64,000 bases of DNA from Oculina patagonica (lineage: Eukaryota), in assembly GCF_052425735.1 (NCBI RefSeq), contig NC_135758.1:12772001-12836000 (forward strand), read 5' to 3'. A program made the translations under genes and the position numbers. Positions 34,855 through 58,532 of the stretch are shown here, piece by piece. Numbering within the stretch: the stretch's first letter is position 1; the number at the start of each line of letters is the position of its first letter. The notes beneath the pieces were generated by a model, which saw only the letters and a list, made by a program, of their open reading frames with translations, did not search any database and was not told where the DNA came from.

Positions 34855-36989
34855 CGTTCCTAATTGAAAAATATTAATAAAATGTATTGATTTCTAATAA
34901 TAATAATAATAATACTAATAAGATTAACAAGAGAAAAACATATTGTAAAACAACACATATAGATACATACAATTTTTTACGACAGATTTACGATACTGGA
35001 TAGCGCTTTAGAACGCCATGCGCGCTATTTTCGTCTTAACTATCTGTCCTAGTACGCAACAGACCGTTGAAACGAAAATCACACGAATGGCTTTCTAAAG
35101 CATTAGAATGACAAAAAAGTGACACCAGGTGAGATTTTAAGTTTTATTATAGCTTTTCAATGGCTGTAAGAGATATTTTTCCCAACTTTATTTAAAATCC
35201 ATACAAGCTCTTCCTATAGCACATCCATACAAACTGTCATAGTACGCTTTGGGTACCTGTGGACTCGCTTACAAAAGTGCAAGATTTTCATTTCACTTAA
35301 AAAATTATGTGAATGGCAGGAGGCTTGTTTTAGTTAAGGAGCATGTTCATTTCCAAACAAGGTGACATCTCATAGTCTGTGCAAATTGCAAGTTATTATA
35401 AATGCAGGAATAAAAGATGATGTAAACAAGATCCACTGTTCTGACATGTTTCATGAACATTCGTTTCAATTGTTAACTTTTAAATAATTTCTCCCAAATT
35501 TATTGCTGTAAATTTACTAAAAATTCCATTCAATTGATTGAAATTTTATTTTCCAGACTCCAGCATTTCTGCTACCTTAGTGATCAAAGATCCGGGCACA
35601 ACAAAGATTGCCCTAATCATGCAGCATACAAATGCAAATGTTAGAGCACATGCCTTTATCAAAATAAGTCGACTTAACATTTGGCGAGATCAATAATGTA
35701 TTTGCTGACTCAAAACTTGACAAAAGTTGTGAAGAATATGGGGATACCACTGAAAGACTGCAAACAAGAGAATAAAAAAGCTTCCAAACAAAAGAGAAAT
35801 CATTAATATATACAAGATTCAAGAAAGAAGGGATGTTGAAAATTTTAATCACACAAGTTTCTGTATGTCTATCTTTTATACGTTTTTCTAAGAAACATGT
35901 GTCAATACATGTACAAAAACAACTTTCAAAATCTATAAATGAAAACCAGACATACAAATATGACATGTACAGGTGGCAAAAAGTGGCAAAAGAGTGATCA
36001 TTATTACAATTCTTAGAAAGAAGGCATGTTGAAAATTCCAACCATAATAAGTCATGCAGAACTGGCATCAATGTCTTTTACTAAGGAAATGCGTTACAAA
36101 ACAACATCCAGTTGGGCTCTTAGTCTCCTCTTGCCAAGCACATTGGTATAATAATTAACAGAAATATACATGTTCAGCAAAAACAAATTCTTGATTATGT
36201 GTGAAATTACAAATGGCAAAATGAAATAAGTAGCCATGACTCTGTGTGCGGACCTTCATCTCCCTAGTTATTCTTAGAAAGATGGGAAGTTGAAACTCCA
36301 AAAAGTACGCCTAACTTTTAGGCATGTCTGTATAAAAACGAGCGCCCTGCGATCTGTCAGACAGAATTCGAAGATTTCATTTCAGTTAAGATTTAGTATA
36401 AAATGCAGAAATGCAGTGGGGCTTTTTCGTCCACAATAACTAAGCATGTGAAACGCATCGTAACATAAATAAATCTAGTTTACGTTCAATCAATCAATCA
36501 TTTTTTATGCTCTTAGGACTACAAGCTCATTGGTATAATAAAAGAAATATAGACATGTTTAGCAAAAATATTCTCGTTGTTTTTAATGCCTCGCTAAGTA
36601 AAATTATAGCTCGCACACAAATTAAATGGCAAAATAGATTAAGTAGCCATGACTCTGTGTGAAGACCTTCACCTCCTTAAAATTCCTAGAAAGATGGGAA
36701 GTTGTAACTCTAAGTGCGTCTATCTTTTAGGCGTTTATGAATAAAATGAGCGCCCTGCAATCTGTGAAAGAGAAGTTTTATTTCAGTTAAGATTTGGTAT
36801 AAAATGACTTGCCTGAATAAGACATGCTCAAATTTTACATGTAAGCTTGACATGACTGCTCATGGTTCAAGTAATACGAGATCTCAAAAACCGAAAAACC
36901 CTTCCCTTCCCGGGAACCTTCATGTAGCAAATCAAAGCTATAAAGAGGAAAAATCTCGTTTGTGAATAACATCTCAGCAACTTACGATC

Positions 36990-37380
36990 TACAGTACAGC
37001 CCCGATAACTCGAACTCTGAAGGGAAACAAAAAACAGTTCGAGTTAGCGGGGTTTTGAGTTATCGCGGTCGATTTAATATTTAATTTGCAAAGTTAATAA
37101 TTGATAGTTTACTGATTGTTCAGCACTTTTCAGTATACAGTACAATGTAAGTTGAATTTATCCCTCCAGAAACTCTAACACGACCATACATTATTATGAT
37201 AAGAGTGCAAAATGGCTGTCAAATACGTGATCTGTTCGTTGCTCTAATCAATGGGCAACCGTGGCGAGTTGCAAGAACTAAAATTCGAGTTATAGGGGAA
37301 AATTGATCCAAATGGTTATCAAGTGAAACGAAATTTAGTTCAAGAGGGCGGATTGTTCGAGTTATCCGAGTTCGAGCAAT
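36990..37380. mobile_element. Degenerate Tc1/mariner-like MITE (GATAACTCGAAC / GTTCGAGTTATC modules); copies at ~39270-39665, 42205-42595 and 44485-44880
   Basis: TACAGTA..CGATAACTCGAAC at the left and GTTCGAGTTATCCGAGTTCGAG at the right. Confidence 0.55.
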
Positions 37381-37915
37381 TGGTTGCAAGTAAATTTTCA
37401 CTAGCTCTTTGCAATTCACGAGAAAATATGTGCACAAACGAACAAAACCTAACAATGTTGACATTTGCGATCCCGAAATAAACATTCGGATGAATTTCGG
37501 AGACAACACTGATCAGATTAACGCCTTATTACAGCAAATTTTGATGAAGTCAACATTTATTTCCTTGTTCGAACAAAACTTGGGGCTTTTTGCATTGGTG
37601 ACCAAATTGGTCAGAAACCGTGAGTTCAACGGAAGCAAACCAAATAACAGTGAGGTTAAACCATAGACGTTTTTTATACACATGCTAAGCCGAATTTTCG
37701 CCAAAACATCAATATATAAAAGCTCAGTCGATTGCTTTTCCTTCTCATTGTTAAAAGTGAAAGTGCGCCACAAACAAGAATTTTAACTTCCGCTTTCCCT
37801 CCGTGGCTTACAAATTTTCGTTTTTACGTTCCTTAATGCAAACCTAACACAAGAAATGAGTCTGACTATCTCTAATAAGTTACATCAGTGCTTAAAAAAA
37901 TTTACATTTGTATTT

Positions 37916-38040
37916 GCTTACCTGGAAACTATAAACGCTATATCCTTCCAACCTCTTGGGTTGTTTACAGCCGATATTTTAAATCATCACTGCACGTAAA
38001 AGAAAGTTGGACACCAGTCACGTGTCAGTTGTTCACCAAT
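37916..38040 (-). promoter_or_regulatory. Putative promoter + non-coding first exon cassette A1
   Basis: CCAAT 38036-38040; GTCACGTG 38017-38024 (11-nt gap); donor CAG|GTAAGC at 37921-37916. Confidence 0.6.
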
Positions 38041-40217
38041 GTTACATTAAAATTACAATTGCCGAAATGTGCCTCAAAACTCAACAAAAGTTGTCAAAAA
38101 TATGGGAATACCACTGAAAGACTGCTGACAAGAGAATAGAAAAGCTTCCATACAACAGAGAAATCCTTTAATGTATACAAGACATACAGCAAACTACAAT
38201 CACTGCCCATAACCCTTTTGACCCCAATTTCCGAGTCAATTCCAAGAAAGAAGGAATAATGAAAATTGCAATCACACAAGTTTCTGCATGTCTATCCTTA
38301 TACCTTTTTCTAAGAAAGATGTGTCTACCTTCAATACCTTTTACTAAGAAAATGAGTTACAAAAAACAAAAAAGGTTTAGATCTGCAAAGATATACAATG
38401 GACGAGCACATTGGTAAAATAATTAACAGAAATAGACATGTTTAGCAAAAGATCTGTTGTTCATAATGAATAAAATGACAAATGACAAAAAACCTTTATC
38501 TCCCTAATAAATCTTAGAAAGATGGGAATTTAAAACTCTAAAAAGTACGTCTAACTTTTAGGCATTTCAGTATGAAAATGAGCGCATGGCAATCTGTCAG
38601 ACAGAAGATTTCATTTCAGTCAAGATTTACTACAAAATGCAGAAATGCAGTGGGGCTTTTCGTCCACAATATCTAAGTATGTAAAACACGTCGTAAAAAA
38701 AAAATTACGTTCAATCAATCAATCAATCTGCATTTTTGGTGCTGGAATTTCCTATGGCCAAGCTCATTGGTATAATAATGAGACATGTTTAACAGAAATA
38801 TTCTTGTTGCTTTTAATGCCTCGCTAAATATAATCATAGGTAACACAAAAATTAAATGACAAATGACAAAATACCACAAACAGCCATTACTCTGCGTGAG
38901 GACCTTAACCTCTCTATAATTCCTAGAAAGATGGGAAGTTGTAACCCTAAGTGCGTCTATCTTTTAGGCGATTTTGTATGAAATGAGCGCCCTGTAATCT
39001 GCCAGACAAAAAGTTTCATTTCAGTAAAGATTTAGTATAAAATGCAGAAATGCAACAGAATGCCCAAAGTCACTTGCTGAATAAGACATGCTCAAATTTT
39101 ACATGTAGGCTTAACATGACTGCACAAGGTTCAATTATAAAAACATTTTCAAAGTTATTAAATACATTGTAAATGCAAAAAACCCTTCCTGGCAACCTTC
39201 AAGTAGCAAATCAAAGCTATAAGGTTGCAAATATCTGGTTTGTGAATAACATCTCAGAAACTTGTGATGTACAGTACTGCCTCGATAACTCGAACTAGAT
39301 CTGAAGGAAAACAAAAACCCGTTCGAGTTAGCGAGTTTTCGAGATATCGAGGTCGATTGAATATTTAAAAATTTGCAAAGTTAATAACTGATACTTTACT
39401 GGTTTTCAGCACTTCTCAGTATGATGTACAGTGCAAATTTAACATATCTTGCCTAGATCTGTAACACGACTATGCATTCTTATGAAATGAGTGGAAAATT
39501 CACTGTCAAATACGTGATCTGTTCGTTTCTCTAATCAATGGGCAACCGTGGCGAGTTGCAAGAACCGGAATTCCAGTTATCGGGGTAAATTTGACCCAAA
39601 TATTGATCAAGAGAAACGAAATTTAGTTCGAGTGGGCGGGGTGTTAAAGTTATCCGAGTTCGAGCAATTGGTTGCAACTAAGTTATTACTAACTCTTTGC
39701 AATTCACGAGAAGATATGTGCACAAACAAACGCAACCTAGCAATGTTGACATTTGCTTCCAGTAGAGCTGCAAGTTTATACAAAAGGCATCCTTGAGACA
39801 ACTAAACCTTCAGATAAATTTCGGAGGATCAAAAAAACACCTTATTGCTGCAAATTTCGATGAAGTAAACATTTGCTTTCTTTTTCGAACGAAACCTGGG
39901 GCTTTTTGGCAACCACAATGGTCAGAATAGAAACCGTATTTTAACCAATGCAAACCACATAACAGTGAGCTTAAAACATAGACCTTTTGTATTCACCTCC
40001 TAAGTCAACTTTTCGTCAAGAACATCCGGATCAAACGCTTAAACGATTGCTTTTCTTTCTTATTGTTTAAAGTAAAAGTGCGCAACAAACAAGAATTTTC
40101 CGGTTTCTGTTTGTGTCTTAAAAATCTTTTCGTTGTTACGTCCCTAAATACAAACCTACACAAGGAATGAGTCTAACTCGATTTTAGTTGCATCCTAAAA
40201 CAGCTACATTTGTATTT

Positions 40218-40374
40218 GCTTACCTGGAAACAATAGAACTGTAATATGAGCCAAACGCCAAGACTGCGAGCCTTTCAAGCTTTTGTGTTGTTTAAATACA
40301 GCCGATAGCTTAAATCACCACTGCATATGAAGGAGGAAGGTTGGTAACCAGTCACGTGTCAGTTTTTTACCAAT
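40218..40374 (-). promoter_or_regulatory. Putative promoter + non-coding first exon cassette A2
   Basis: CCAAT 40370-40374; GTCACGTG 40351-40358; donor CAG|GTAAGC at 40223-40218. Confidence 0.6.
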
Positions 40375-43130
40375 AAAATTCGATGTTTATGGCGGATGTA
40401 AATAAGCCGTCTCCCGAGTTTGGGATGGGGGTGGGGGGGTGAGGGTGAGGTACTCCCATTACCAGAAACTGCTACAGAACGGTATAGAAACGGTAAAGAA
40501 ACAATACAGAACGTCCTGGAGAAGGGTAGGGAGAATTTTCTTTTGATTCAGCGAAGTATTTAATGACACGACGTAACAATAATGCGGAATTTAAGCTTAA
40601 TTGCAAGTTATTATAAATGCAGGAATAAAAGATGATGTAAACAAGATCCACTGTTCTGACATGTTTCATGAACATTCGTTTCAATTGTTAACTTTTAAAT
40701 AATTTCTCCCAAATTTATTGCTGTAAATTTACTAAAAATTCCATTCAATTGATTGAAATTTTATTTTCCAGACTCCAGCATTTCTGCTACCTCAGTGATC
40801 AAAGATCCGGGCACAACAAAGATTGCCCTAATCATGCAGCATACAAATGCAAATGTTAGAGCACATGCCTTTATCAAAATAAGTCGACTTAACATTTGGC
40901 GAGATCAATAATGTATTTGCTGACTCAAAACTTGACAAAAGTTGTGAAGAATATGGGGATACCACTGAAAGACTGCAAACAAGAGAATAAAAAAGCTTCC
41001 AAACAAAAGAGAAATCATTAATATATACAAGATTCAAGAAAGAAGGGATGTTGAAAATTTTAATCACACAAGTTTCTGTATGTCTATCTTTTATACGTTT
41101 TTCTAAGAAACATGTGTCAATACATGTACAAAAACAACTTTCAAAATCTATAAATGAAAACCAGACATACAAATATGACATGTACAGGTGGCAAAAAGTG
41201 GCAAAAGAGTGATCATTATTACAATTCTTAGAAAGAAGGCATGTTGAAAATTCCAACCATAATAAGTCATGCAGAACTGGCATCAATGTCTTTTACTAAG
41301 GAAATGCGTTACAAAACAACATCCAGTTGGGCTCTTAGTCTCCTCTTGCCAAGCACATTGGTATAATAATTAACAGAAATATACATGTTCAGCAAAAACA
41401 AATTCTTGATTATGTGTGAAATTACAAATGGCAAAATGAAATAAGTAGCCATGACTCTGTGTGCGGACCTTCATCTCCCTAGTTATTCTTAGAAAGATGG
41501 GAAGTTGAAACTCCAAAAAGTACGCCTAACTTTTAGGCATGTCTGTATAAAAACGAGCGCCCTGCGATCTGTCAGACAGAATTCGAAGATTTCATTTCAG
41601 TTAAGATTTAGTATAAAATGCAGAAATGCAGTGGGGCTTTTTCGTCCACAATAACTAAGCATGTGAAACGCATCGTAACATAAATAAATCTAGTTTACGT
41701 TCAATCAATCAATCATTTTTTATGCTCTTAGGACTACAAGCTCATTGGTATAATAAAAGAAATATAGACATGTTTAGCAAAAATATTCTCGTTGTTTTTA
41801 ATGCCTCGCTAAGTAAAATTATAGCTCGCACACAAATTAAATGGCAAAATAGATTAAGTAGCCATGACTCTGTGTGAAGACCTTCACCTCCTTAAAATTC
41901 CTAGAAAGATGGGAAGTTGTAACTCTAAGTGCGTCTATCTTTTAGGCGTTTATGAATAAAATGAGCGCCCTGCAATCTGTGAAAGAGAAGTTTTATTTCA
42001 GTTAAGATTTGGTATAAAATGACTTGCCTGAATAAGACATGCTCAAATTTTACATGTAAGCTTGACATGACTGCTCATGGTTCAAGTAATACGAGATCTC
42101 AAAAACCGAAAAACCCTTCCCTTCCCGGGAACCTTCATGTAGCAAATCAAAGCTATAAAGAGGAAAAATCTCGTTTGTGAATAACATCTCAGCAACTTAC
42201 GATCTACAGTACAGCCCCGATAACTCGAACTCTGAAGGGAAACAAAAAACAGTTCGAGTTAGCGGGGTTTTGAGTTATCGCGGTCGATTTAATATTTAAT
42301 TTGCAAAGTTAATAATTGATAGTTTACTGATTGTTCAGCACTTTTCAGTATACAGTACAATGTAAGTTGAATTTATCCCTCCAGAAACTCTAACACGACC
42401 ATACATTATTATGATAAGAGTGCAAAATGGCTGTCAAATACGTGATCTGTTCGTTGCTCTAATCAATGGGCAACCGTGGCGAGTTGCAAGAACTAAAATT
42501 CGAGTTATAGGGGAAAATTGATCCAAATGGTTATCAAGTGAAACGAAATTTAGTTCAAGAGGGCGGATTGTTCGAGTTATCCGAGTTCGAGCAATTGGTT
42601 GCAAGTAAATTTTCACTAGCTCTTTGCAATTCACGAGAAAATATGTGCACAAACGAACAAAACCTAACAATGTTGACATTTGCGATCCCGAAATAAACAT
42701 TCGGATGAATTTCGGAGACAACACTGATCAGATTAACGCCTTATTACAGCAAATTTTGATGAAGTCAACATTTATTTCCTTGTTCGAACAAAACTTGGGG
42801 CTTTTTGCATTGGTGACCAAATTGGTCAGAAACCGTGAGTTCAACGGAAGCAAACCAAATAACAGTGAGGTTAAACCATAGACGTTTTTTATACACATGC
42901 TAAGCCGAATTTTCGCCAAAACATCAATATATAAAAGCTCAGTCGATTGCTTTTCCTTCTCATTGTTAAAAGTGAAAGTGCGCCACAAACAAGAATTTTA
43001 ACTTCCGCTTTCCCTCCGTGGCTTACAAATTTTCGTTTTTACGTTCCTTAATGCAAACCTAACACAAGAAATGAGTCTGACTATCTCTAATAAGTTACAT
43101 CAGTGCTTAAAAAAATTTACATTTGTATTT

Positions 43131-43255
43131 GCTTACCTGGAAACTATAAACGCTATATCCTTCCAACCTCTTGGGTTGTTTACAGCCGATATTTTAAATC
43201 ATCACTGCACGTAAAAGAAAGTTGGACACCAGTCACGTGTCAGTTGTTCACCAAT
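43131..43255 (-). promoter_or_regulatory. Putative promoter + non-coding first exon cassette A3 (copy of A1)
   Basis: CCAAT 43251-43255; GTCACGTG 43232-43239; donor at 43136-43131. Confidence 0.6.
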
Positions 43256-45432
43256 GTTACATTAAAATTACAATTGCCGAAATGTGCCTCAAAACTCAAC
43301 AAAAGTTGTCAAAAATATGGGAATACCACTGAAAGACTGCTGACAAGAGAATAGAAAAGCTTCCATACAACAGAGAAATCCTTTAATGTATACAAGACAT
43401 ACAGCAAACTACAATCACTGCCCATAACCCTTTTGACCCCAATTTCCGAGTCAATTCCAAGAAAGAAGGAATAATGAAAATTGCAATCACACAAGTTTCT
43501 GCATGTCTATCCTTATACCTTTTTCTAAGAAAGATGTGTCTACCTTCAATACCTTTTACTAAGAAAATGAGTTACAAAAAACAAAAAAGGTTTAGATCTG
43601 CAAAGATATACAATGGACGAGCACATTGGTAAAATAATTAACAGAAATAGACATGTTTAGCAAAAGATCTGTTGTTCATAATGAATAAAATGACAAATGA
43701 CAAAAAACCTTTATCTCCCTAATAAATCTTAGAAAGATGGGAATTTAAAACTCTAAAAAGTACGTCTAACTTTTAGGCATTTCAGTATGAAAATGAGCGC
43801 ATGGCAATCTGTCAGACAGAAGATTTCATTTCAGTCAAGATTTACTACAAAATGCAGAAATGCAGTGGGGCTTTTCGTCCACAATATCTAAGTATGTAAA
43901 ACACGTCGTAAAAAAAAAATTACGTTCAATCAATCAATCAATCTGCATTTTTGGTGCTGGAATTTCCTATGGCCAAGCTCATTGGTATAATAATGAGACA
44001 TGTTTAACAGAAATATTCTTGTTGCTTTTAATGCCTCGCTAAATATAATCATAGGTAACACAAAAATTAAATGACAAATGACAAAATACCACAAACAGCC
44101 ATTACTCTGCGTGAGGACCTTAACCTCTCTATAATTCCTAGAAAGATGGGAAGTTGTAACCCTAAGTGCGTCTATCTTTTAGGCGATTTTGTATGAAATG
44201 AGCGCCCTGTAATCTGCCAGACAAAAAGTTTCATTTCAGTAAAGATTTAGTATAAAATGCAGAAATGCAACAGAATGCCCAAAGTCACTTGCTGAATAAG
44301 ACATGCTCAAATTTTACATGTAGGCTTAACATGACTGCACAAGGTTCAATTATAAAAACATTTTCAAAGTTATTAAATACATTGTAAATGCAAAAAACCC
44401 TTCCTGGCAACCTTCAAGTAGCAAATCAAAGCTATAAGGTTGCAAATATCTGGTTTGTGAATAACATCTCAGAAACTTGTGATGTACAGTACTGCCTCGA
44501 TAACTCGAACTAGATCTGAAGGAAAACAAAAACCCGTTCGAGTTAGCGAGTTTTCGAGATATCGAGGTCGATTGAATATTTAAAAATTTGCAAAGTTAAT
44601 AACTGATACTTTACTGGTTTTCAGCACTTCTCAGTATGATGTACAGTGCAAATTTAACATATCTTGCCTAGATCTGTAACACGACTATGCATTCTTATGA
44701 AATGAGTGGAAAATTCACTGTCAAATACGTGATCTGTTCGTTTCTCTAATCAATGGGCAACCGTGGCGAGTTGCAAGAACCGGAATTCCAGTTATCGGGG
44801 TAAATTTGACCCAAATATTGATCAAGGGAAACGAAATTTAGTTCGAGTGGGCGGGGTGTTAAAGTTATCCGAGTTCGAGCAATTGGTTGCAACTAAGTTA
44901 TTACTAACTCTTTGCAATTCACGAGAAGATATGTGCACAAACAAACGCAACCTAGCAATGTTGACATTTGCTTCCAGTAGAGCTGCAAGTTTATACAAAA
45001 GGCATCCTTGAGACAACTAAACCTTCAGATAAATTTCGGAGGATCAAAAAAACACCTTATTGCTGCAAATTTCGATGAAGTAAACATTTGCTTTCTTTTT
45101 CGAACGAAACCTGGGGCTTTTTGGCAACCACAATGGTCAGAATAGAAACCGTATTTTAACCAATGCAAACCACATAACAGTGAGCTTAAAACATAGACCT
45201 TTTGTATTCACCTCCTAAGTCAACTTTTCGTCAAGAACATCCGGATCAAACGCTTAAACGATTGCTTTTCTTTCTTATTGTTTAAAGTAAAAGTGCGCAA
45301 CAAACAAGAATTTTCCGGTTTCTGTTTGTGTCTTAAAAATCTTTTCGTTGTTACGTCCCTAAATACAAACCTACACAAGGAATGAGTCTAACTCGATTTT
45401 AGTTGCATCCTAAAACAGCTACATTTGTATTT

Positions 45433-45589
45433 GCTTACCTGGAAACAATAGAACTGTAATATGAGCCAAACGCCAAGACTGCGAGCCTTTCAAGCTTTTG
45501 TGTTGTTTAAATACAGCCGATAGCTTAAATCACCACTGCATATGAAGGAGGAAGGTTGGTAACCAGTCACGTGTCAGTTTTTTACCAAT
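45433..45589 (-). promoter_or_regulatory. Putative promoter + non-coding first exon cassette A4 (copy of A2)
   Basis: CCAAT 45585-45589; GTCACGTG 45566-45573; donor at 45438-45433. Confidence 0.6.
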
Positions 45590-46089
45590 AAAATTCGATG
45601 TTTATGGCGGATGTAAATAAGCCGTCTCCCGAGTTTGGGATGGGGGTGGGGGGGTGAGGGTGAGGTACTCCCATTACCAGAAACTGCTACAGAACGGTAT
45701 AGAAACGGTAAAGAAACAATACAGAACGTCCTGGAGAAGGGTAGGGAGAATTTTCTTTTGATTCAGCGAAGTATTTAATGACACGACGTAACAATAATGC
45801 GGAAATTAAGCTTAATTCACAAAGAACATGAGTTCAAATCATTGAAATTTTTTCAGGCCCTCGACTCAACTTCTTTAACTGCAAAGATCTTCTTTTCTTT
45901 CGGTGTTTCTACTGCAGTTGAAACGAACTAACTTTAAAATATTGTTTTCAACGTTGGTGCCTTTTTTGTCATTGCTGATGTATCAAAACTGCTCTATGTA
46001 ACAGCCCATTGTAAACTATTATTTAAGTTTAGTTCTGTTGTTTTACACATACCTTAGATAGTAACATTACGTTTAACCGGTGAGAGTTG

Positions 46090-46164
46090 CTATATAAATG
46101 AAAGAGTCATAAGGTATTCCAGAGACTTTTTACCATCATTATTAACAGCCTAAAGACAATCCAT
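46090..46164 (-). pseudogene. Decayed fragment of the UBAP1-like last exon (MDCL*AVNNDGKKSLEYLMTLSFI*)
   Basis: Aligns to 60920-60994 with a CAG>TAG nonsense change. Flanking 45960-47150 matches pieces of 60810-63975. Confidence 0.85.
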
Positions 46165-46617
46165 TAATCAGTAGGCCAATAAATAAATGAATTCATAAAC
46201 CTTTATAATCCAAGTTAAATCTCAGTTGAGAAAAAGTGCTGCAGAAACCACAAATAGGTAAGAAACAAGCAACATTTTCAATGATATAAATGGAACCAAG
46301 AATTCTATGGCCAGTTTTTCACATATGGGGGGGGGGGGGGCAGGCACAAGTCTTCTTTGTGGTCAATTATTACATTTGTGGCTTTTACACACCTTTATTA
46401 CAAAGGAGGTGGAGAGATGCTGGTGTGAAGTCACATTCATTGTTTTCTGTAATGCATGAAAAAGTGTATACTAGCTTTTCACTGGGCTACATTGCGCTAC
46501 TAGTCCACGACCAGTGATGAGGCCACAAAGGTGTTTTTTCCCCAACATTTTTATTTCCCCTCAGTTATTTTAAAATATACTTTTGGGCACAAAGATCAAA
46601 AGCATCTTTACAGCATA

Positions 46618-46956
46618 CTATAAAATTCCAGTTATAAGCCCTGGTCTTATACAACTTCGTAAGGGGTTTTGGTTGGGGTCATAAACTGAGCGGCTTATTT
46701 TCGGGAGGGCATATAAACGGAATAAAAAATGCTGCCAGCCACCGGGAATTACGTTTTTTATGTTAAAAAATCATAATAAGGCAACATTTATTTAGCCCTG
46801 GTCAGTACTGTCATTCAGTAGAGGTGGGCTTATATCCGGGGGAGCATTTAACCGAATGTTTTTTTGTTTTGAGGTAGATGGGCCTACGACCAGGGGCCTT
46901 CTAAGCGGGAAGGCGGTGGGGGGGGGGGGGGGGGGCTTATAACCAGAATTTTACGG
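46618..46956. mobile_element. Tc1/mariner-type MITE
   Basis: TA|CTATAAAATTCCAGTTATAAGCCC ... GGGCTTATAACCAGAATTTTACGG|TA. Confidence 0.75.
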
Positions 46957-49152
46957 TACGTTAAATATATATAATAATTATTATTCAAATCTACATGTAT
47001 AATATTATTAATACATAAAATAACGGTACAATAAGTTCATCTTTGTTATAACTAGATGATTATCTACCACCTATGAACAATTTCCATTCATTTGGGATTA
47101 CACCACTACTAAAAATTATTTATCACTTAGTTTATCCAATTTACCTATCAAAAAATCCCGAACAATTATTTCAAAATATTCACCGAAAAGTGCAAAACAG
47201 AAGCTTTTAAAATCCTTCCAAAAAGGTTTATGAGAGGGCATTTATAAAATAGGTGATAAGCCATTTCCGATCTAACTAACAAAATGTGCAACAAAGCCTA
47301 CATTAATTTAATATTGGCTAGAAAACTGTTTACTTGACAAGTGTTGTATCATTCAAGATTTTAAATTTGAAACCAAATAAAAAGCCTTACTTTTAAAAAC
47401 ACTCAAGTACGAGTTTAGTCATCTACACCAAGACCACGTATTCGTGTACACCTCGAAACCAAAGGATCATTATGCTGTCTAGTGTAACTGATTTCTTATC
47501 TCTGTATGTTGCATTATTTCAGGAAAATGACATTCTCGTGTGCTATATTGAATTAAAACTGAAAGGCGAGATTGCTTAATCTCATTAAGCATATTCCTAG
47601 TTAAATGCATAGTTAAAAAACATAAGCTGAAGGTGATTATTGTTGTGAGCAAATTGTCTGTGTGTCTAGCTAGGTCCTAGAAATAATCCTAATTTCCTCC
47701 ACAACCATAGTGGTATTTTAACTTTATTTCTCGTTAATTTATTACCTAAACACTGACGTGCACAAGAAAACCTGTATGACCTGTGTATACTACTGTAATT
47801 TGGTGTAATTCGTAATAACATGACAACAATATCTGTTAGACAGACTTTTACTTTGAGGTCCGTTCTCTAGAATTAAAACTAAAATTTAACCCCATTTCCT
47901 TTTGCATACCCCAAAATGTTTTACCTTAGCAAAACATTGTTAGTTAAGCTTCTCAACGACTTTTTGTGCCTTATTTTCTCTAAGCGCTTTAATAAGAACA
48001 CGTGAATACGTTAATACATTCAAAAACAAATTCCAAACGATGGCAAATGCAATTAAGGTTATTCCTTGGTATTGCATTGCACATCCTTACTGCACGTAAT
48101 TTCACACGTGAGTAGCACGCATACGTTAAGAAAATATGCTAGTACACTACATGATAGCAACAAGTTGAATCAAAGTCTATAGAAAATGTTTCACTTTATA
48201 ATGAAAAACTCACTTGTTCAATTGTTCCTTGAAGTCAATGCAGTACACTTTTTCTCATGTTTCACTTTACTTTATCCCTTTTTCTACTCCCATATATGAA
48301 GCCTAATAAAAGTAAACAGTTCAACTATAAAGTTTTCTAAAAGCCAATATCACAAGTAATTATCAGGTAAAATAAAAGGTCATCCTGCCCCTTAATGATT
48401 ACTGGGACCCCGTTTTTATTTCAAAACGTAACTAAAGGGACGCTACAATTTTACTGTGATACGTATCAATGAACTTATATATTTTCTTTGCAATTATAAA
48501 ATTATTTATTAGCAACCGAATGCACAAGCAAATTTGAGCCGCTACGTAGTCCCTTTTCATTTTTTGCCTGGTCGTAGTGTTGAACCAAAGTAAACAAAAT
48601 TCGTTGCTTTTTCTCTAAAGGATGAAAGGGACATATTACTAAAAGATCTTCTGCTAGAACTAACAAATGATTCACCTAAAACTCCAGGTGAACATCCACG
48701 ACTCAATATTCATCAACAGCTAACTGCAATCAGCATCTAACAAATCAGATCATAAAACCAGATTCTAGAATCATTATCAGCCGCATCAAAAAAAGGTCTA
48801 CAGTCTCCCCTGTGAGATATTTTATCCGAGACTACAACCTGCACCCACTAAGAGCTACTAAGGCTATGACATACAACCTACAACATACTACCTCAGTCCA
48901 CACCAGTCGATTTCATGTTAAATTTAGCAAGTCACACTAGCAACTTCTGCTTGATGTACAACTTTACAGCTTTCATAGGACAAAATGGCAATTGAGACAA
49001 GGTTGGTTTGTTATCTTGCTTTGACTGGCATTTCAATGGGACTGCTGTCTAAAGTTAATATTGTCTGCATAGCCAAAAAACTAAGTTATATGTAGTCTGT
49101 TGAAGTCTAAAAAATTTTTTCTCCTTACTGCATTTTGAGAGTCCGCGTTTCA

Positions 49153-51225
49153 TTAGTCCTGAATACCCTCGTGCGACAATGACATCAGGTACAAATTCAA
49201 TGCCAACTCACCGCCTGCCTTATTAGCATTGAAAGTTCCTCTACATTTAGGACACTTGGTTTTCAACAGATGACCAGAATATTCTACTACCAATGACTCA
49301 ACAGCACACAAGGGACACTTGTATTTTGTCACCTGAATTCCTTTCAGTGATCTAATCAATTTGGCAGCGACTTCAGCACCATGTCGGTCGTAGGCTCTCT
49401 TTTCTTTCTCACTCAAGTCGTCTTCAGTCCAAAACACGTCCACAAATTCTAGGCCAAGGACATCAGAATTCTGCACCCTGAAGAACCCCTTGTCTGCCCA
49501 GTCATCCCCCCATGAATTCATCAGACGAAAGCTCTCGGCGTCATAACTTGTGAGAACTACTGCATGGCCACCAGGGTCGCTGGTTGAGTGATGCTTCAAA
49601 TCGAGGTAGGATCTTGTAAGGATTCCTTTTGGCTTTTCTTCACAGAACTGGGAGAACTGATCCCACTGGGCACCCGTTAGATAAAATCTGACAACCACTG
49701 GTCTCTTTGCAGAGACGGCTTTCATTGCACCAACAGCATCAACCTTTTTGCATTGAAGACGATATGTTGGACAAATTTCCTTGAGAACTTTAATGGTAGG
49801 GGCTCCGTGTTCTCCATATTCAGCAATCAATTTTCTTGTTAACTCAAAGAAATCTGGATAACCACCATCTCGCCCTATGATGCGCTTCATGGCCAGGTGT
49901 AGAACAGTAGCAGATGCATTTGCATAACAGGTACCTCCATGTTGTCTTTTAGCACCAAACCCTTCACTTGCCTGGTTTATATAGATATCCAGATCAACTG
50001 AGGAGAGGATATCTGAAAGAACATCTTGACTCAGGACACCTTTCTTGGCCATGTCACAGACATCTTTGATAATGTCCGGATGGTTCACCTGAAAGAAGAG
50101 TCTGGTTTCATTATTGTCAATATCGATCTCCCATCCTCTCTTCACAAACAGGGTGCGTGGTATCTTCTGAGTAGTGATGGTGGAGCTCATTCTGAACATG
50201 GTCTTTGCTGGCTTTTCCCAACTTTCATCTAGAATGCTGTACAAATGACGAGGATCGGATAGCTGTTGGTCTGTAATGAAACAACTCACAATGGTGACTC
50301 CCAGATCAGACAACTGTTGGATTGGTGGGTCGCCTTTATCACCTGGCTGACCATCTGAGAGAATGAAGAGAAGTTTCTGATAATCTGCAAATTCTGGATA
50401 GGAAAACAGATCCACTGAATGGTGCATAGCTTGAATGAGTGGAGTCCCTCCGTAAATTAAGGGTTCCACCAGTTTTAGCAACTCTTCAGCCCGTTTATCA
50501 GTTAGTTCTTGATCGCCAATACTGGCATGCAGTATTTCTGATGCATAAGGAATACTTTTAATTGCAGCTTTGCTTACACCCACTAATTTTACACTGGCCA
50601 TTATGGTCTCAGTCACAAGTTTTTTACCCTTGTCTATTGCTTCTCTGACTGAATCTTCTGTGGCCCATCCTTGAATTCGGGAACCCACAAATGGAACCTT
50701 TCCTGTCATGAAAAATGCACCTTCAACACCAATATTACGAAAGTCATATAATGATAATTCTCGACATTCTCGAGGAAGACAATCATCAACAAACCTTTTG
50801 GTAAAATCAGAACTTTTTTGCAAAAAATGAAGTATTGCAGCAGCAGTAGTATCCTCCACAACTTTCAGCAAGGTTTCCATTTTCCCCCAAGTGCGAACTC
50901 TACTTGCTCCATTTGTTTCAAGAATAGTCAAGGCTTCATCTATTATTTCTCTCTTGCTTCTCTTTGATTTCAAATCTTCAATGACGGATTGTTCCTCTTG
51001 TGCTTTATCAACTGTGGTTAACAAATCAAAAATCTCAGGATCAGAAGGACTTCCAAAAGCCAAAGCAAAGGTCTGATTTGAAGATGGGACATCATGCCTG
51101 ATCAGTTCATCGACCACTTTGAAGATAGATCTTGCCCAACGCCCAACTTCCTCATCCACCCCGTCACCAACACTGTTTTTCATGGAGCCAGACACATCCA
51201 CCAGAATTCCTATCAGGGTCGACAT
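49153..51225 (-). CDS. vWA + papain-like C1 cysteine peptidase + zinc-ribbon protein, paralog B (690 aa), single coding exon
   Basis: Same motifs as paralog A: DVSGS, GGTPL, ILSDG, QHGGTCYANA, GGHAVV, MNSWG, CPLC/CPKC. Acceptor TTTCTTTTCAAGATAAG|GAACG-ATG. Confidence 0.92.
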   Translation of the reverse strand: MSTLIGILVDVSGSMKNSVGDGVDEEVGRWARSIFKVVDELIRHDVPSSNQTFALAFGSPSDPEIFDLLTTVDKAQEEQSVIEDLKSKRSKREIIDEALTILETNGASRVRTWGKMETLLKVVEDTTAAAILHFLQKSSDFTKRFVDDCLPRECRELSLYDFRNIGVEGAFFMTGKVPFVGSRIQGWATEDSVREAIDKGKKLVTETIMASVKLVGVSKAAIKSIPYASEILHASIGDQELTDKRAEELLKLVEPLIYGGTPLIQAMHHSVDLFSYPEFADYQKLLFILSDGQPGDKGDPPIQQLSDLGVTIVSCFITDQQLSDPRHLYSILDESWEKPAKTMFRMSSTITTQKIPRTLFVKRGWEIDIDNNETRLFFQVNHPDIIKDVCDMAKKGVLSQDVLSDILSSVDLDIYINQASEGFGAKRQHGGTCYANASATVLHLAMKRIIGRDGGYPDFFELTRKLIAEYGEHGAPTIKVLKEICPTYRLQCKKVDAVGAMKAVSAKRPVVVRFYLTGAQWDQFSQFCEEKPKGILTRSYLDLKHHSTSDPGGHAVVLTSYDAESFRLMNSWGDDWADKGFFRVQNSDVLGLEFVDVFWTEDDLSEKEKRAYDRHGAEVAAKLIRSLKGIQVTKYKCPLCAVESLVVEYSGHLLKTKCPKCRGTFNANKAGGELALNLYLMSLSHEGIQD

Positions 51226-52168
51226 CGTTCCTTATCTTGAAAAGAAACATCAATATATAAGATTAACAGGGATAATTAGTTATAAGACATTCCTAATTTT
51301 TGTCGTCGAAATGACAATATTTTTTCTAGGCAGGACCTTTTGAGCCTACTCCAACTTGTTTTGTTGTTTAATTTGCTTTCGTTAACATGATGTAAGGCAA
51401 TGTGTTGACCAGATTAGTGTAGCTATGTTTTTATTTCTGGTCAACAGGGCGGGGAGTGTTACGGATGTCGTGACATTATGTCACGCTTTAATGGCGCAGT
51501 GCATTGTGAGAGGCTGAGAGCACGAGCACACCTTCACAGGCAATGTTAATGTTTCCTGGCGATTAAAGTGGAGGAGGGAGAAGCCTTCTGAACCTACTCC
51601 AACTTGCAATAGTGTTGGATATTTAACAGGTGGACATTGCTTTGGCATTACTGATTAGATGTATTAGAAGACTTGTTGTATTTTCTATATTTTTGTTATC
51701 TGTATTTAAAATGTATTTGCTGCTGTTGGAGATGTTTCGCGCGACGTTAGCGCGTTTCCAATATCCGCGTCAGTTGTTGCTGTTTTGGATCACAAATTGG
51801 CAGTTACTTGGTGAAATCCGAGTAAAATGTTTTCCACAAGCTGATTCGTGTATCGCTGTTCTAATCCCGTAGTTATTTTATATCATAATTTGTAACTTTC
51901 TACCTCTTGGCACGTACAAATTGTCCATGTTTGAGATATGTTACAGTTTTGAATGTATTTAATGGGTAGCCAAAATAAAATGTTGTTTGAATACTAAATT
52001 CAAAATTCGCGCTTTTCGCGCATGGCACAATCAGGTCGTTCTGATTTAGTTTAATCTGGGAAATTTGCACCTGAAGCCTAACTGACGCTATTTCACTAGC
52101 CTATCGTTCTTTTGCCTAGTTCTTACACGAACCATTATTAAGATTACATCATGTTGCTTATAATTATG

Positions 52169-52359
52169 TAGCCTATGTTCAATATATCAAAATTCAACCA
52201 TGGCATTAAGGCTTTCTGACCAATTTTTTTTTTTTTTTTCAACACTCTTGTGGAAGTTAGCAGAAAGAATTAACAGACAAAGAAATATTTAAAAATTAGC
52301 ATTTTAGCCAGAAAGCCTCTGAGTTCTGTTAGAATTTTGATGTATCGAACATAGGCTAT
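52169..52359. mobile_element. Short MITE
   Basis: TIR TAGCCTATGTTCAATATATCAAAATTC / GAATTTTGATGTATCGAACATAGGCTA. Confidence 0.7.
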
Positions 52360-52974
52360 TGAAACTGTTATACCCAACCATGGCAAGGTTTCCCACAAGA
52401 AAAATTGAAGGGCTTCCCCCAGTCATTATTGAGCCATTTTGTCCGCCTAAAATTGACCAATTTTGCATGTGATAATAATTTAGTGCTTCATTTTCAAGAA
52501 CAAATCCTTGGAAACCGACACGTTTTTTTTTTTACAACAGTGGAGGTACCATCTGAACGTTTTTATTAAAAAAAATAAACAAGAGGTGTCCTATCCTTTG
52601 GTACAGGCCCTTTCATTAAAAAGGAGTTACATCATTATCTCTTAGGCATGCACAGTGGATTTAAACCTGAGCAAATTGTAGCCGTGTCGTGACGGGTCGT
52701 GAGCTTCCTTTTTTTTGTTTTCGAGCTCCGAATATTACAACTTTGGCGGCGAAGATGCTAAAATGGCTTTGGTGGGTTAGTGAGAAAATATATAGAAGGA
52801 AAAGCGTATTATGCAGTGATTTACGTCGAGATAGTTCACGAGGCTCAACATTTCTGCTTTTTGATCGAAGCGGAACCTGCCTGTGGAATTCTTCGCAATA
52901 TGCTGGCCCCTGAAAGAGGCCGAAAGATAAGTCTTTTAAAGCTTTGAAAGAGATTTTAAGCGCTCATTATTCTC

Positions 52975-53914
52975 GGAGGGTAAAATCTTTTCTAATACCG
53001 TCGCACTCGTTCTTTCAAAGCTTTCCTATCATTAAACTTCAGCCTTGTTTTGCAACTGTACGAACGACGCACCACTCTTAACAATAGCTCTACTTCATCA
53101 TCTGTCCAACTAACGCTTTCTGTGGCATCTTGATCCGTGTTGGACCTCGTTTTGGACGATATTTTGTTTATTTTGACCAGGAGAAGAAAGTCGGCAATTT
53201 TCTTTGACGGCAAAGTGGTGCCTGAAAACGGTGCAAGTATGTATTAATCAAGCTTTTGGTAAGAAAGACATCACCCAACTGCATGTGTGTGAAATGCGAC
53301 TAGTGGCGGTTTTTGTGTTTGATGTTTCACGCCGCTGAGATGTTTTCTGCATTTTCAGCCAGATTTCTCACCTGACGTCACTGATAATGTTTTGGCGGCG
53401 TGGAATAACAAGCGAAGCATTTGTCACGGTTGACATTTAAGAACCAAAAAAGGGTAAATCATTTCAGAATCACTGGTATTTTTAATTAGTATAATTCGCA
53501 AGGCTTACTTTTGCCAGACTGGTCACCATTATCACTGTTTGTTGTTTTGAAGTCCGGCAAACTTCAAACAAAATGTAAATATGAATTGTGTGTTTTGTGC
53601 ACGGTAAAGACCGAAACATGCGAATTAACAATGAACTTTGTCAAGCTATTCACCAATCCCTTAGCAGCCATTTGATAGCCACTACGCACACTTGGTTGCC
53701 CGGCACCGCTATGCCTCATTTTTTAGTCGTGTAACAAAGGAAGTTTCTTCCCTCCCCCCTGATGTTTACCGAGCAACAGATCGTTACAAAATCAAAGCCC
53801 CCATAGTTTCGATGTGTGTAAACGGTTGAGAATCCAAATATCCTTTTAATCTTCTAATATTCTTCTTCTAACATCTATGAATCCGATAAAATATCCCCTG
53901 CTGTAAACGTAGTC
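52975..53914 (-). mobile_element. Decayed PIF/Harbinger-like element with Myb/SANT-like remnant (SWTDDEVELLL), interrupted by hAT-like copy 2 (53178-53761)
   Basis: Homologous to 56970-57260; right TIR ...GTAAACGTAGTC|TTA. The nested element is flanked by a degenerate 8-bp TSD (ATTTTGAC/ATGTTTAC). Confidence 0.55.
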
Positions 53915-54668
53915 TTAAAGTCATTATTCCTTTTGTTTTGTTCATTATTCCTTTTCTCAGAACTAATCATTATTCATTATTCCTTTCTGGGAACTATTTC
54001 AAACAACTGCGAAATGGTTGATTTGTAAATAAGATCTTGCTTATTGCTGAAAATGGGAGCGGTACGATCTATATAGTCCAACATTTAGTAGTTTCAAATA
54101 AGTCTATAGCTATTTTGCAATCCACAAGAAAGTGTATTTGAGGATTTGATAAGAGATCATAAGGCGCTGTGCCTATGATGATATGATAACATCGAGTAAT
54201 AACTTGTAAAGCTTAGTGCAGGTTTTCATTAAGATGCCACAAATAAACCTTCGAATCAACATAGAAGATAATATGTTAATCTGAAATTCGCTGCTTTAAA
54301 AAGCGGCAAATTTCATTGCAAATTTAAAGCCCGAATTTTACTTCGTTGACCGAAAGAAACTTCGGACTTTTTGGTATCCAATTTGGCCCATAATGGTCAG
54401 AAACGAAACTTTGCGTTAAACGAGTGTAAACCAAATGCTTGTGAGCTTCACAGACGAACTCGATCTTTCCTCAAAATCGCCAGGGTTTTTAGTTCTAAAG
54501 CGATTGATTTTAAACTCATCGGTGAAAGTGAGAGCCATAAACACGAATTTTAACTTCCGGTTGCTCTTATGGCCAAAATACCCCTTTCTTTGCAACGACT
54601 CCAAATCCTAATAGGAGCAATGCGTCTGAGTCGCTCTTAGATGCATCCTTTACACACACGTTTCACTT

Positions 54669-54816
54669 GCTTGCCTGATATTTCTAAACGCCAAAAGCCA
54701 AGAAAGCGAACCTTCAAACTTCTTTGCGTATTGATCACACCTGCCCGAATTGCATTAATTAAACACTGGACGCCGAGGAAGGTTGGGGTCAAGTCACGTG
54801 CCGATTTTTCACCAAT
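54669..54816 (-). promoter_or_regulatory. Putative promoter + non-coding first exon cassette B1 (GC-type donor)
   Basis: CCAAT 54812-54816; GTCACGTG 54793-54800; donor CAG|GCAAGC at 54674-54669. Confidence 0.5.
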
Positions 54817-56142
54817 GAAATTTGTCGTTGTTCCATGATCACGATTCCTGGAAATTCTTGAACAGGAGGTGTGACGTGTCACCAAGGACTTACTGTTACG
54901 TCTAAATATACTTCCTAGCATGATGCTTTTTTAAGCCCTCGGAAAACAGTTCTTCATTGTATTGTTTCAACTGCAGTATATTTGTCAACGGTTTTCGATG
55001 TTGGGGCAAATGTGTTTTGACAATCAGATTTGCCCAGATTTGGAATTTCATAGCTTGTGTAGCTGCAGAATTTCGTGCGAGTGCTTTGCTGCAGCAGCGG
55101 AGCGTCTAAGAAGGTACGGCCAAGCTGCGAGGAGAATGGGAATTTTTCCTTGCGGCGGAACAGAGAGAAGATATGTGTGTTCTAGTGGTATGTTTACACA
55201 CTTTCCAATTGCAACTTGCCATCTCATCCCTTAAATTTGTCTGTTTTCATTCGCTTCAAGACCTATTTCTTTGTTATCGGACACCCTACCGTTGTTTTGG
55301 AATAATAGTTATTTTTCCACAAAGATTGATGCGGAAACATTAAATCCTTTTCTCGGAAATATATATATTCACCATTCATTATTCATTTCTGGGAACTATT
55401 TCACACAAATGCGAAATGGCTGCCCCTGGGCTGATTTCAAAATAACATCTTGCTTACACTTGCTATAGTCCAACATTTATATTGAAGCCTGAAGCTTTTT
55501 TCCAATCAACAAGAAAGAGGATTTGAGGACCTGAAAAGGCGCTATGCCCTTCAAACTTAAAACTTACAAAAACCGAGTTAGACGAACACCACTTAGTGCA
55601 AGTTTTCGTCAAGACGCCTATAAAAAATAAACCTTCGGATCAACATAGAAGATAATATTGATCAGATTACATGTAATACCTTATAGCGGGAATTTAAAAC
55701 TTACTTGACCGAACGAAACTTGAGGCTTTTTGATAACCACAATGGTCAAAAACTGTGCGTTGAAACTGTTGTAAACCAAATACTTGTGAGCTTTCAAATA
55801 AAATCACCCTTTCCTCAAAATCGCCAGGGTTTTAAATTCTAAAGTGATTGCTTTGAAACTCATCGGTGAAAGTGACAGCGCTACCATAAACATGAATTCG
55901 GTTAACTTTCGGTTGCTTTTTTAGCCAAAAAAAACCTTTCTTTCCAACGGTTGCCTATACCTATACCAGCAATGTGTCTAAGTCGCTCTCAGCTGCATCC
56001 TTTACACATAGGATGCATCAAACCTATAAACGCCAAAAGCCAAGAAACCGATGCTTCGAACTTCTTTGAGTGTTGATCACACCTGCCGATCGCGTTTGAA
56101 AATAAGTACTGAAGGCCGTGCCTTCTATTAGGCAAAATACTT

Positions 56143-57260
56143 TGACTGCGTTTACACTAGGGTAAATTTTTCGGATTCGTAAAAAATCCGGGATGTTTTG
56201 TTACCGGATTCGTTTTGCCGTTTACACGTAGGTGGGCGAACCCGAAATGTCCCGGTTTAGTGGCGTCTCCGAAGATATTGAATCCGCAATCCAAAGATCA
56301 TACTTTGTATCCGAATATTGTTGAATCCGCAATGTTTTGTCGTGTAACGCTCTTGCAATGAATCCAAATATTTATACGCTTGCGATAGTGACTTTTCTCC
56401 ATCTTCTTGTCGATATGAATCTACGAAATCTTTTCTAATACCCTCTAAAGTACATTTAATGCACCTATCAATGTAATCCCGCGGGGGGAGGCGGGAAAGG
56501 CACGGGATGACAACAAGAAGATCCCCTCTGTCGGGCATTTGACTGCGAGTCGCGTCCCGGGGGTTGGGACAGACTTTGACCGGGAAGCGCCGGACCAATC
56601 TCAGACGCGATACCAAGTTCTTCCTCTCGTGGCTTGGAAATCATATGCTTCATGCAGACGATCTGATCATCGGCATTTATCTGCCACTTTTAACGCCAAG
56701 TCATAAAATAGCGAAAGAATATTTTACTTTCAAGTACATTTGGAGTAGGAATCCTAAGGGAAATCTAAGACGTCGGACTTTTCAATATGAATACCGAGGG
56801 ATGAAGAAAATCAGTAAAGGTATGTGGAAAGTATGTGTTTGAACTGCCCCTGGGTGGGTCTCTAGGTATGAACAAAAATTTTTCCCACCCTCGGAGACTC
56901 TTTTTACTTTTTTGTCAAATCCCCACCCCTGGCCCGCACCCCCCCGCGGGATTTACATTGATAGGTGCATAACGCTTTTCTCCTCCAATCCTTGGAAATC
57001 GTTTTTGAAGCTGTACGAATGCAACACTCTTAACAGTAGCTCCATTTTATTACCTATCCATCTAACGTTTTTTGTGGCATCTTGATTCCTTCTGGACCTT
57101 ATTTTGAGTGGTATTTTGTTCATGTTGACCGAGCAACGCCCGGATCGTTCCCTAATAAAGGGATGTGTGTTAACGGTTGAGAATCCGAATACCCTAAATT
57201 CGATAAATTCGGAAAAAATTATGAATCCGAAAAAAATATCCCCTGTTAAAAACATAGTCT
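56143..57260. mobile_element. PIF/Harbinger-like non-autonomous element with a nested MITE
   Basis: TIR GACTGCGTTTACACTAGGG..TTTTTCGGATTC / GAATCCGAAAAA..CCCCTGTTAAAAACATAGTC; TTT on both flanks; degenerate Myb-like remnant RWIGNKMELLL. Confidence 0.7.
56460..56969. mobile_element. MITE nested in the Harbinger-like element
   Basis: Perfect TIR TGCACCTATCAATGTAA / TTACATTGATAGGTGCA with TAA on both sides. Confidence 0.88.
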
Positions 57261-58073
57261 TTATTCGATATTCCTTTTCATTTTCAAACAGGGTATTCGT
57301 TATTTATCATTTCGTTTCTATTCACAAAGATTGATGCAGAAACTTAAAATTCTTTTCTCGGAACTATTTATTATTCATTATTCCTTTCTGGGAACTATTT
57401 CAAACAACTGCGAAATGGCTGCTTTGTAAATAAGATCTTGCTTATTGCTGATCCCGAGAGTGGTATGATCTATAGTCCAACATTTACTGTTTTCAATTAA
57501 GCCCATAGATTTTTTGCAATCCACAAGAAAGTGTATTTGAGGACTTGATAGGGCGCTGTGTCCTTCAAACATGAAAAATCCGAGTTAGACCAACATCACC
57601 TAGCGATACTTATAATTTGCTTTCAGTAAGGTTTAGTGGAGGTTTTCATCGAAAAAAATAAAAAATAAAATAAGATAAACCTTAGGATTAACATAGAGGA
57701 TAATATTGATCAGATTAATACCTTATAACGGGGATTTAAGCCAAAAACTAACTTCCTTGACCGAACGAAACTTGGGGCTTTTTGGTAACCAAAATGGTCA
57801 GAAACTGTTCGTGAAACTGATGTAAACCAAAAACTTGTGAGCTTTCTCACAGGCGAAATCGACCTTTCGTTAAAAACGCCAGGGTTTTTACATTCTAAAG
57901 CGATTGCGTTCAAACTCATTGGTGAAAGTGAAAGCGCTGTCATAAACACGAATTTTAACTTCCGGTTGCCTTTTTGGCCAAAAGACCCTTTCTTTGCAAC
58001 GGTTCCAAATCCTAATACGAGCAATGTGTCTGACTCGGTCCTAGATGCATCCTAAAACACATACGTTTTGCTT

Positions 58074-58221
58074 GCTTACCTGAAAACTATAAACGCCGAA
58101 AGCCAAGAAAGCGATCCTTCGAACTTCTTTGCGTGTTGTTTACAGCTGTGGGGATCGCATTAATCAAACACTGGACGTAGAGGAAGGTTGGGCACAAGTC
58201 ACGTGCCGATTTTTCACCAAT
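58074..58221 (-). promoter_or_regulatory. Putative promoter + non-coding first exon cassette B3
   Basis: CCAAT 58217-58221; GTCACGTG 58198-58205; donor CAG|GTAAGC at 58079-58074. Confidence 0.62.
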
Positions 58222-58285
58222 GAAAATCGTTGTTGTTCCATGATGATGATTCTTGGAAATTATTGAACAAGAAGTGTCACCAAGG

Positions 58286-58532
58286 AGGCCCTGCCAGGGG
58301 GAGGAGGGGGGGGGTTTCCTGTGTCGCTTGTCTTAATTTGTGCCGTGTCGTGCCGTGTCGCTGTTGTATCAAACTTCGCGTCGCTGTCCGTAGTAAAATT
58401 GAAGGAAAATTGCTTGTCCTTGTCGGAATTTAAATTTTTCCAAAAGAGTTATCGTTTGACGCGATTTTATTTTATGTGCTGTCGCTACTCTTTGGGCGAT
58501 GTCGCTTGTCGGAATTTACCCTGGCAGGGCCT
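58286..58532. mobile_element. hAT-like MITE with 8-bp TSD
   Basis: Perfect TIR AGGCCCTGCCAGGG / CCCTGGCAGGGCCT; TSD CACCAAGG/CACCAAAG; empty site visible in the paralogous unit at ~54880 (gtcaccaaggactt). Confidence 0.9.

Follow-up and report, generated by a model that had tools for sequence, protein, structure and literature searches.

Repeated untranslated first exons upstream of tandem vWA and papain-like protease genes in the coral Oculina patagonica: probably redundant copies of a family 5' module

Why should a gene that encodes its whole protein in one exon be preceded by several copies of another, untranslated exon? The question is raised by a stretch of 64,000 nucleotides (nt; hereafter the window, with positions counted from its first letter) on chromosome CM126635.1 of the stony coral Oculina patagonica (assembly GCA_052425735.1). 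Here two neighbouring tandem paralogs on the minus strand, genes A and B, each have a single coding exon for a protein with vWA and papain-like domains, and upstream of each lies an array of cassettes that combine promoter-like motifs, a non-coding first exon and a splice donor. A first-pass annotation, made from the letters alone, had read the arrays as a multi-promoter locus with variable first exons in which promoter copy number tunes the dose or context of one constant exon. The feature is real, its structural reading is largely correct and one predicted junction is confirmed. We consider it probable, at roughly 0.68, that the cassettes are redundant alternative first exons, copied by local segmental duplication of the gene family's 5' module and free to decay.

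The coding exon of gene A (32701-34859, minus strand) contains an open reading frame (ORF; 32701-34854, ATG at 34854) for 717 amino acids (aa) with a VWA and a papain-like C1 domain, and that of gene B (49153-51230, minus strand) contains one for 690 aa (49153-51225, ATG at 51225); the Pfam matches of both to VWA and Peptidase_C1 are weak yet above threshold. The splice acceptor of gene A (34860-34885, minus strand; AG at 34861-34860 after a T-rich tract) reads ...ttttcaattAG/GAACG-ATG, where the slash marks the splice site, and that of gene B reads ...ttcttttcaagatAAG/GAACG-ATG. The AG exactly 5 nt before the ATG had been noticed in both ORFs and is borne out; together with the T-rich tract it places the exon starts at 34859 and 51230. 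One constant exon encodes the whole protein, and since the ATG follows the acceptor by 5 nt and the first exons of the two gene A cassette types, A1 and A2, contain no ATG, the coding sequence is the same whichever first exon is used.

The upstream exon that these acceptors imply can be traced in deposited data. KAL9986941.1 (P0122), a partial protein of 311 aa, is a member of the 90% cluster of the gene A protein, and its first 29 residues are absent from the gene A ORF. Translation of 40305-40224, the A2-type exon, joined to 34859 gives KAL9986941.1 exactly, while the unspliced genomic sequence there contains several stops; the annotated range of gene A also begins at 40305. Judged by its translation, the deposited model corresponds to this predicted join, so that the A2/A2' donor-acceptor junction is present in public annotation. 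The model, open at both ends and with a non-ATG start, looks transcript-derived. In cDNA-like Logan contigs from a more distantly related homolog (P0090), the cassette exon comes first and is followed by sequence unrelated to the intron; the local alignment score against the cassette exon is 41, compared with a shuffle maximum of 23-32. The RNA contigs used for the locus itself are of low depth and mostly stand under other organism labels. One of them, X4-31, matches A1 at 140/144 positions (37921-38064) and diverges exactly at the donor, and two others, X2-12 and X3-20, cease to match at 34861, the point that a ...CAG/GAACG junction would predict; the splice partners of all three are unseen. 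Among the joints listed for these contigs none ties a cassette donor to 34859.

All cassettes lie upstream of their genes and on the genes' strand, and the intact ones show the described order of ATTGG-N11-CACGTGAC, an AT-rich box and the donor CAG/GTAAGC. We take CACGTGAC to be an E-box of the basic helix-loop-helix leucine zipper type, ATTGG to be an NF-Y site (a reverse CCAAT box) and CCGGAAGT, in the intron further downstream, to be an ETS site. The composite motif has six matches in the window, every one on the minus strand, where chance alone would give 0.03; the six are homologous duplicates and not independent events. The donor sits about 95-125 nt downstream of each motif; we cite exon ends here, whereas the earlier donor coordinates were those of the first intron base. 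Gene A has four cassettes of two types: A1 (37881-38116; motif 38017-38040, exon 1 end 37922, GT 37921-37920), which is the most eroded copy, A2 (40181-40461; motif 40351-40374, untranslated exon 1 40305-40224, GT 40223-40222), the A1 twin A1' (43096-43331; motif 43232-43255, exon end 43137) and the A2 twin A2' (45396-45676; motif 45566-45589, exon 45520-45439, identical to the A2 exon). All four copies first described are there, but they are two types that a tandem duplication has doubled. The trio at gene B agrees with its first description: B1 (54634-54899; motif 54793-54816, exon end 54675) has the GC donor CAG/GCAAGC, B3 (58039-58297; motif 58198-58221, exon end 58080) is intact, and B2 (55986-56115) is decayed. 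All seven intervals are on the minus strand. What is left of B2 is the 3' half of the exon part, which nhmmer matches with E = 2.5e-15 at model positions 127-262 and nowhere else; B2 lacks the ATTGG/CACGTGAC motif and has lost its donor by deletion. The intact cassettes are mutually alignable over the promoter-like region, exon, donor and beyond, and B3 is nearest to the family consensus among the four intact-motif cassette types of the window. A profile search of the ~40 kb that make up the rest of the window found no further cassettes. A candidate decayed third cassette beside gene A was rejected, as the match of 35706-36300 to 38070-38540 is the tail of the A1 unit.

Comparison with a second coral (assembly ENA ERZ25067872), whose family proteins are ~73-75% identical to gene A, argues that the promoter-like motifs and the non-coding exon do belong to these genes, as had been proposed. 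The second coral has four family genes with 3, 1, 1 and 1 cassettes, located 2-7 kb upstream and on the gene's own strand (nhmmer E 1e-37 to 5e-49). In the window and four related loci (L001, L002, L004 and L011), ~14 copies occur, all upstream of a family gene and on its strand. Because the cassettes lie only upstream of family genes, with none elsewhere in the window, they are, as far as their distribution in the searched sequence tells, the family's standard 5' module and not the dispersed transposon that had been raised as a counter-case. The 3 matches to the cassette pattern in metagenome contigs are due to chance, none being a cassette or close to a family gene, and the scan is uninformative on dispersal.

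On alignment, homology among the cassettes and their conservation across the two species are evident from one end of the module to the other. The promoter-like part conserved between the corals contains GCACGTGACT, CCAACCTTCC and CAGTG, and the exon part contains AAGAAGTTNGAAGG and TTTATAGTTTCCAG; ATTGG is less constant, being altered or absent in 5/6 second-coral copies. The donor is conserved and so, unexpectedly, are about 300 nt of intron beyond it. After the B3 donor this block spans 57800-58079 (~280 nt, minus strand) and holds CCGGAAGT and CCAAT; cross-species alignment places the equivalent blocks at 54400-54674, 39950-40223 and 37650-37921, also on the minus strand. The block may be a downstream promoter or enhancer. 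A structured RNA was considered for it and rejected (consensus fold negligible, -2.7 kcal/mol), and an Rfam scan of 30000-64000 gave no match. A P0090 cDNA running unspliced into the block was likewise discarded, the downstream part scoring at shuffle level.

Just past the right end of the window (L004 9221-11334, ~64814-66927) is gene C, a third paralog in tandem, with one full cassette and one promoter-less fragment of exon plus donor. Its frame is split near L004 10945-10993 into a 590-aa ORF and one of 122 aa in a different frame, and gene C is either a pseudogene or carries an assembly indel that causes an apparent frameshift. Scleractinian corals (Acropora, Montipora and Oculina patagonica) have a strongly expanded set of these proteins, and full-length matches at 52-56% identity were found in the annelid Owenia fusiformis and the fish Coilia grayii. 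A subfamily of ~800-880 aa within the protease family has an N-terminal extension. Exact-protein look-ups with two NCBI homologs and KAL9986941.1 returned no match.

How the copies arose can be read best at gene A. The array consists of two ~2.3-kb units, A2 from 40374 down to 38070 and A1 from 38064 down to 35706, which are 77-82% alike, with about 78% for the cassettes of the two types. Homology between A1 and A2 begins almost exactly at ATTGG, and the downstream copy therefore holds only the promoter core. Both units were then doubled by a tandem duplicate of 5219 bp within 35384-45817, in which 35384-40602 corresponds to 40599-45817 and each copy contains an A1 and an A2 unit. The two copies are 99.94% identical, with three differences (35578, 39612 and 40590), and their joint is clean and gapless with a 4-bp microhomology, AATT. 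None of the three differences falls inside a cassette, so A1 and A1', and A2 and A2', are indistinguishable in RNA. Joint-specific words turned up in two DNA runs, both from the probable source sample, and in no others; the remaining DNA runs for O. patagonica (13-71 million letters) are too small for silence to count. No decayed coding sequence was detected by tblastn between the cassettes, which argues that the 5' module alone was duplicated and that the arrays are not the remains of whole genes.

Dating of the duplications by divergence failed, as four-fold sites of the A and B coding exons (32701-34870 vs 49153-51243) give K4 = 0.19, yet the introns of the two genes cannot be aligned. The A-B alignment ends ~10 nt upstream of the acceptor, while the 3' flanks are alignable for several hundred nt. 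Gene conversion of the coding exons may lie behind this pattern, or else a rapid turnover of the introns. As a separate observation, contigs from RNA runs pile up at 36888-37285, 39475-39673 and 35097-35295 with many odd joints and at depths of hundreds to thousands, compared with about 1-34 over the coding-exon part 34500-34897. These three intervals, the first two of which lie within A units, look like expressed high-copy repeats.

The first-pass annotation held that motifs and donor persist while their surroundings diverge. It is right in that 13 motif bases and the donor are kept, but the cassette as a whole is no better conserved than the surrounding intron: A1 and A2 are 77-79% identical in the cassette vs 81-82% in the flanking intron and rest of the unit, and B1 and B3 84% vs 85-88% in the rest of the unit. 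Scored by matches to the 139 positions that are invariant in the six second-coral copies, A1 reaches 84/139, A2 99/139, B1 104/139, the gene C cassette C1 112/139 and B3 115/139. Differences between B1 and B3 are not depleted at these positions (p = 1). Decay is seen in B2, in the gene C fragment and in the eroded A1. Divergence at intron rate, the decayed B2 and the gene C fragment together argue that extra copies are at best weakly maintained.

These findings can be joined in one mechanism. The module comprises a promoter-like part (the reverse CCAAT box ATTGG, the E-box-containing CACGTGAC, CCAACCTTCC, CAGTG and an AT-rich stretch), an untranslated exon 1 of ~80 nt and the first ~300 nt of the intron, which are conserved. 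Segmental duplications at the locus would have copied the module without the coding exon, beginning with an older ~2.3-kb duplication at gene A and similar ones at gene B and ending with the very recent 5.2-kb duplication at gene A through 4-bp microhomology. As long as a copy initiates transcription and has a donor, it would splice to the one acceptor, 5 nt ahead of the ATG, and transcripts from all cassettes would encode the same protein. The motifs probably drive initiation, A1, B1 and B3 are presumably used as well, and we infer that the array is largely a redundant by-product of frequent tandem duplication and not a system of regulated choice.

Several observations weigh against this explanation. 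Differences between A1 and A2 are modestly depleted at the family-invariant positions (Fisher p = 0.02), which hints that both types keep some constraint and fits redundancy poorly. Contig X4-31 extends 90 nt upstream of the A2-equivalent start and through the ATTGG/E-box motifs; it contains ATTGG/CACGTGAC, and at least one A1-containing transcript thus starts upstream of the supposed promoter, so that in some transcripts A1 may be an internal exon or a longer one. No RNA contig covers the A2 exon and X4-31 alone covers that of A1, and there is no junction-level read support in O. patagonica for A1, B1 or B3. Finally, the deposited partial protein P0124 (KAL9986942.1) is identical to gene C in its first 37 residues and to gene B in the rest; this chimera, which suggests paralog-chimeric transcript assemblies in the annotation and explains why the annotated range of gene B starts inside gene C, means that deposited models are not error-free.

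The alternative that survives best is that each gene has one working cassette, the consensus-like distal A2/A2' or B3, and that the others are inert relics removed with the intron. It would account for extra copies that diverge at about intron rate, for the low score of A1 beside those of A2 and B3, for the GC donor of B1 and the clear decay of B2 and the gene C fragment, for the single cassette of 3/4 second-coral genes, and for the A2 type being the only junction with a deposited model. Against it stand X4-31, whose 97% match singles out A1 from A2 (the two types being ~78% alike) and ends at the A1 donor, the retention of the 13 motif bases and a usable donor in A1, B1 and B3 despite ~15-20% divergence, and the depletion of A1-A2 differences at constrained positions. 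We regard strict inertness of all but one copy as unlikely.

It is also conceivable that copy number of the module is a heritable and fast-evolving dosage dial for the expanded coral vWA-protease family, amplified independently from gene to gene and from one coral lineage to another and with every intact copy firing, a proposal that we find quite unlikely. If it were true that cassette number is polymorphic and correlated with expression, the locus would be a natural example of dosage evolution by promoter duplication.

The cassette count at gene A would fall from four to two if the 5.2-kb duplication were an assembly artefact, for example two haplotypes placed in tandem. Near-identity of the copies, with their three differences, and the restriction of joint-specific words to runs of the probable source sample would suit such an error. 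The joint itself, in contrast, has the clean, gapless form and the 4-bp microhomology that are typical of real tandem duplications, its words occur in two read sets of that sample, and the small size of the other DNA runs deprives their silence of meaning. An artefact is therefore very unlikely in our view.

The proposal that the first-pass annotation itself put forward is a selected and regulated system of variable first exons in which cassette number or choice sets the dose or context of expression. In its favour, arrays of several cassettes are found in both corals (3 copies at one second-coral gene) and not at one gene alone, four diverged copies still carry the motifs and donor, and the 5' module is conserved across species. 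The tuning claim is nevertheless unsupported: the majority of the family genes examined carry just one cassette, the extra copies have diverged at about the pace of the intron, with decay in some of them, and half of the gene A cassettes stem from one very recent duplication that is essentially identical to its parent and known only from the data of the source individual. Non-coding near-duplicates with the same motifs also offer no obvious basis for different regulation, and we judge this reading highly improbable.

To a dispersed mobile element that carries promoter and splice donor and is unlinked to the genes we give almost no credence: the cassette is repeated, and parts of the A units (36888-37285 and 39475-39673) have the very high RNA-contig depth of high-copy repeats, but ~14/14 copies in the window and related loci precede a family gene in that gene's orientation, RNA-contig depth is low over the cassette intervals themselves, the remaining ~40 kb of the window are free of copies, and the cassette exon is the 5' end of family mRNAs (P0090 contigs and KAL9986941.1).

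With redundant first exons as the preferred reading, the locus can be placed among known systems. Protocadherin and UGT1A clusters, to which it had been likened, have coding variable exons, protein diversity and regulated promoter choice. The coral arrays resemble them in having tandem homologous units of promoter plus first exon upstream of a constant sequence, with a conserved promoter element per unit. The likeness fails in the feature that defines those clusters, because the coral exons are non-coding, near-redundant duplicates that yield no diversity of products, and no choice mechanism is evident. CYP19/aromatase, NR3C1 (glucocorticoid receptor) and GATA4 have untranslated alternative first exons that share a common acceptor just before the ATG. 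As in these genes, the coral first exons are non-coding and share an acceptor a few bases before the start codon, and the protein is identical. Their first exons, however, are unrelated in sequence and belong to different tissue-specific promoters, whereas those of the coral are paralogous with the same motifs, which makes redundancy more likely than context-specific control. PMC2795200 is one of the published accounts of such genes.

The closest parallel is hydra of Drosophila melanogaster, which has nine tandemly duplicated alternative first exons, at least four of which act as start sites (Chen et al. 2007, PMC1904467). Both the coral genes and hydra have exon 1 and its start site, putative in the coral, repeatedly duplicated in tandem upstream of one gene, repeats within the units and a structure that differs between related species. 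In hydra several copies can serve as alternative starts; for the coral this is suggested by the A2 model and, more weakly, by the A1 contig. The coral first exons are paralogous tandem duplicates (~2.3-kb units and the 5.2-kb duplicate at 99.94%), as the hydra type requires, and at least two distinct ones lie upstream of one shared exon in both gene A and gene B. The coral case differs in concerning a gene family and not a young fly gene, in having exon 1 copies that are wholly untranslated and in a module that extends over ~300 nt of conserved intron. That several copy types are used is also only partly shown in the coral (A2 by a deposited model, A1 by a single contig). Tandemly duplicated alternative first exons being already known elsewhere, the coral case is well documented and unsurprising. 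Its value lies in a correct gene structure for a large uncharacterised coral family, in which 2-7 kb of intron separate the untranslated exon 1 from the only coding exon, and in a conserved 5' module of ~550 bp that is usable for finding the regulators of the family.

Two annotated neighbours complete the picture of the locus. Downstream of gene A lies a gene for a Cys-loop ligand-gated channel (window ~22701-25967, L003 24339-27605). Beyond 60920 a UBAP1-like gene is annotated (L004 1-15228), whose range coincides in part with the gene C region and with the 5' portion of gene B's annotated range, on the same strand.

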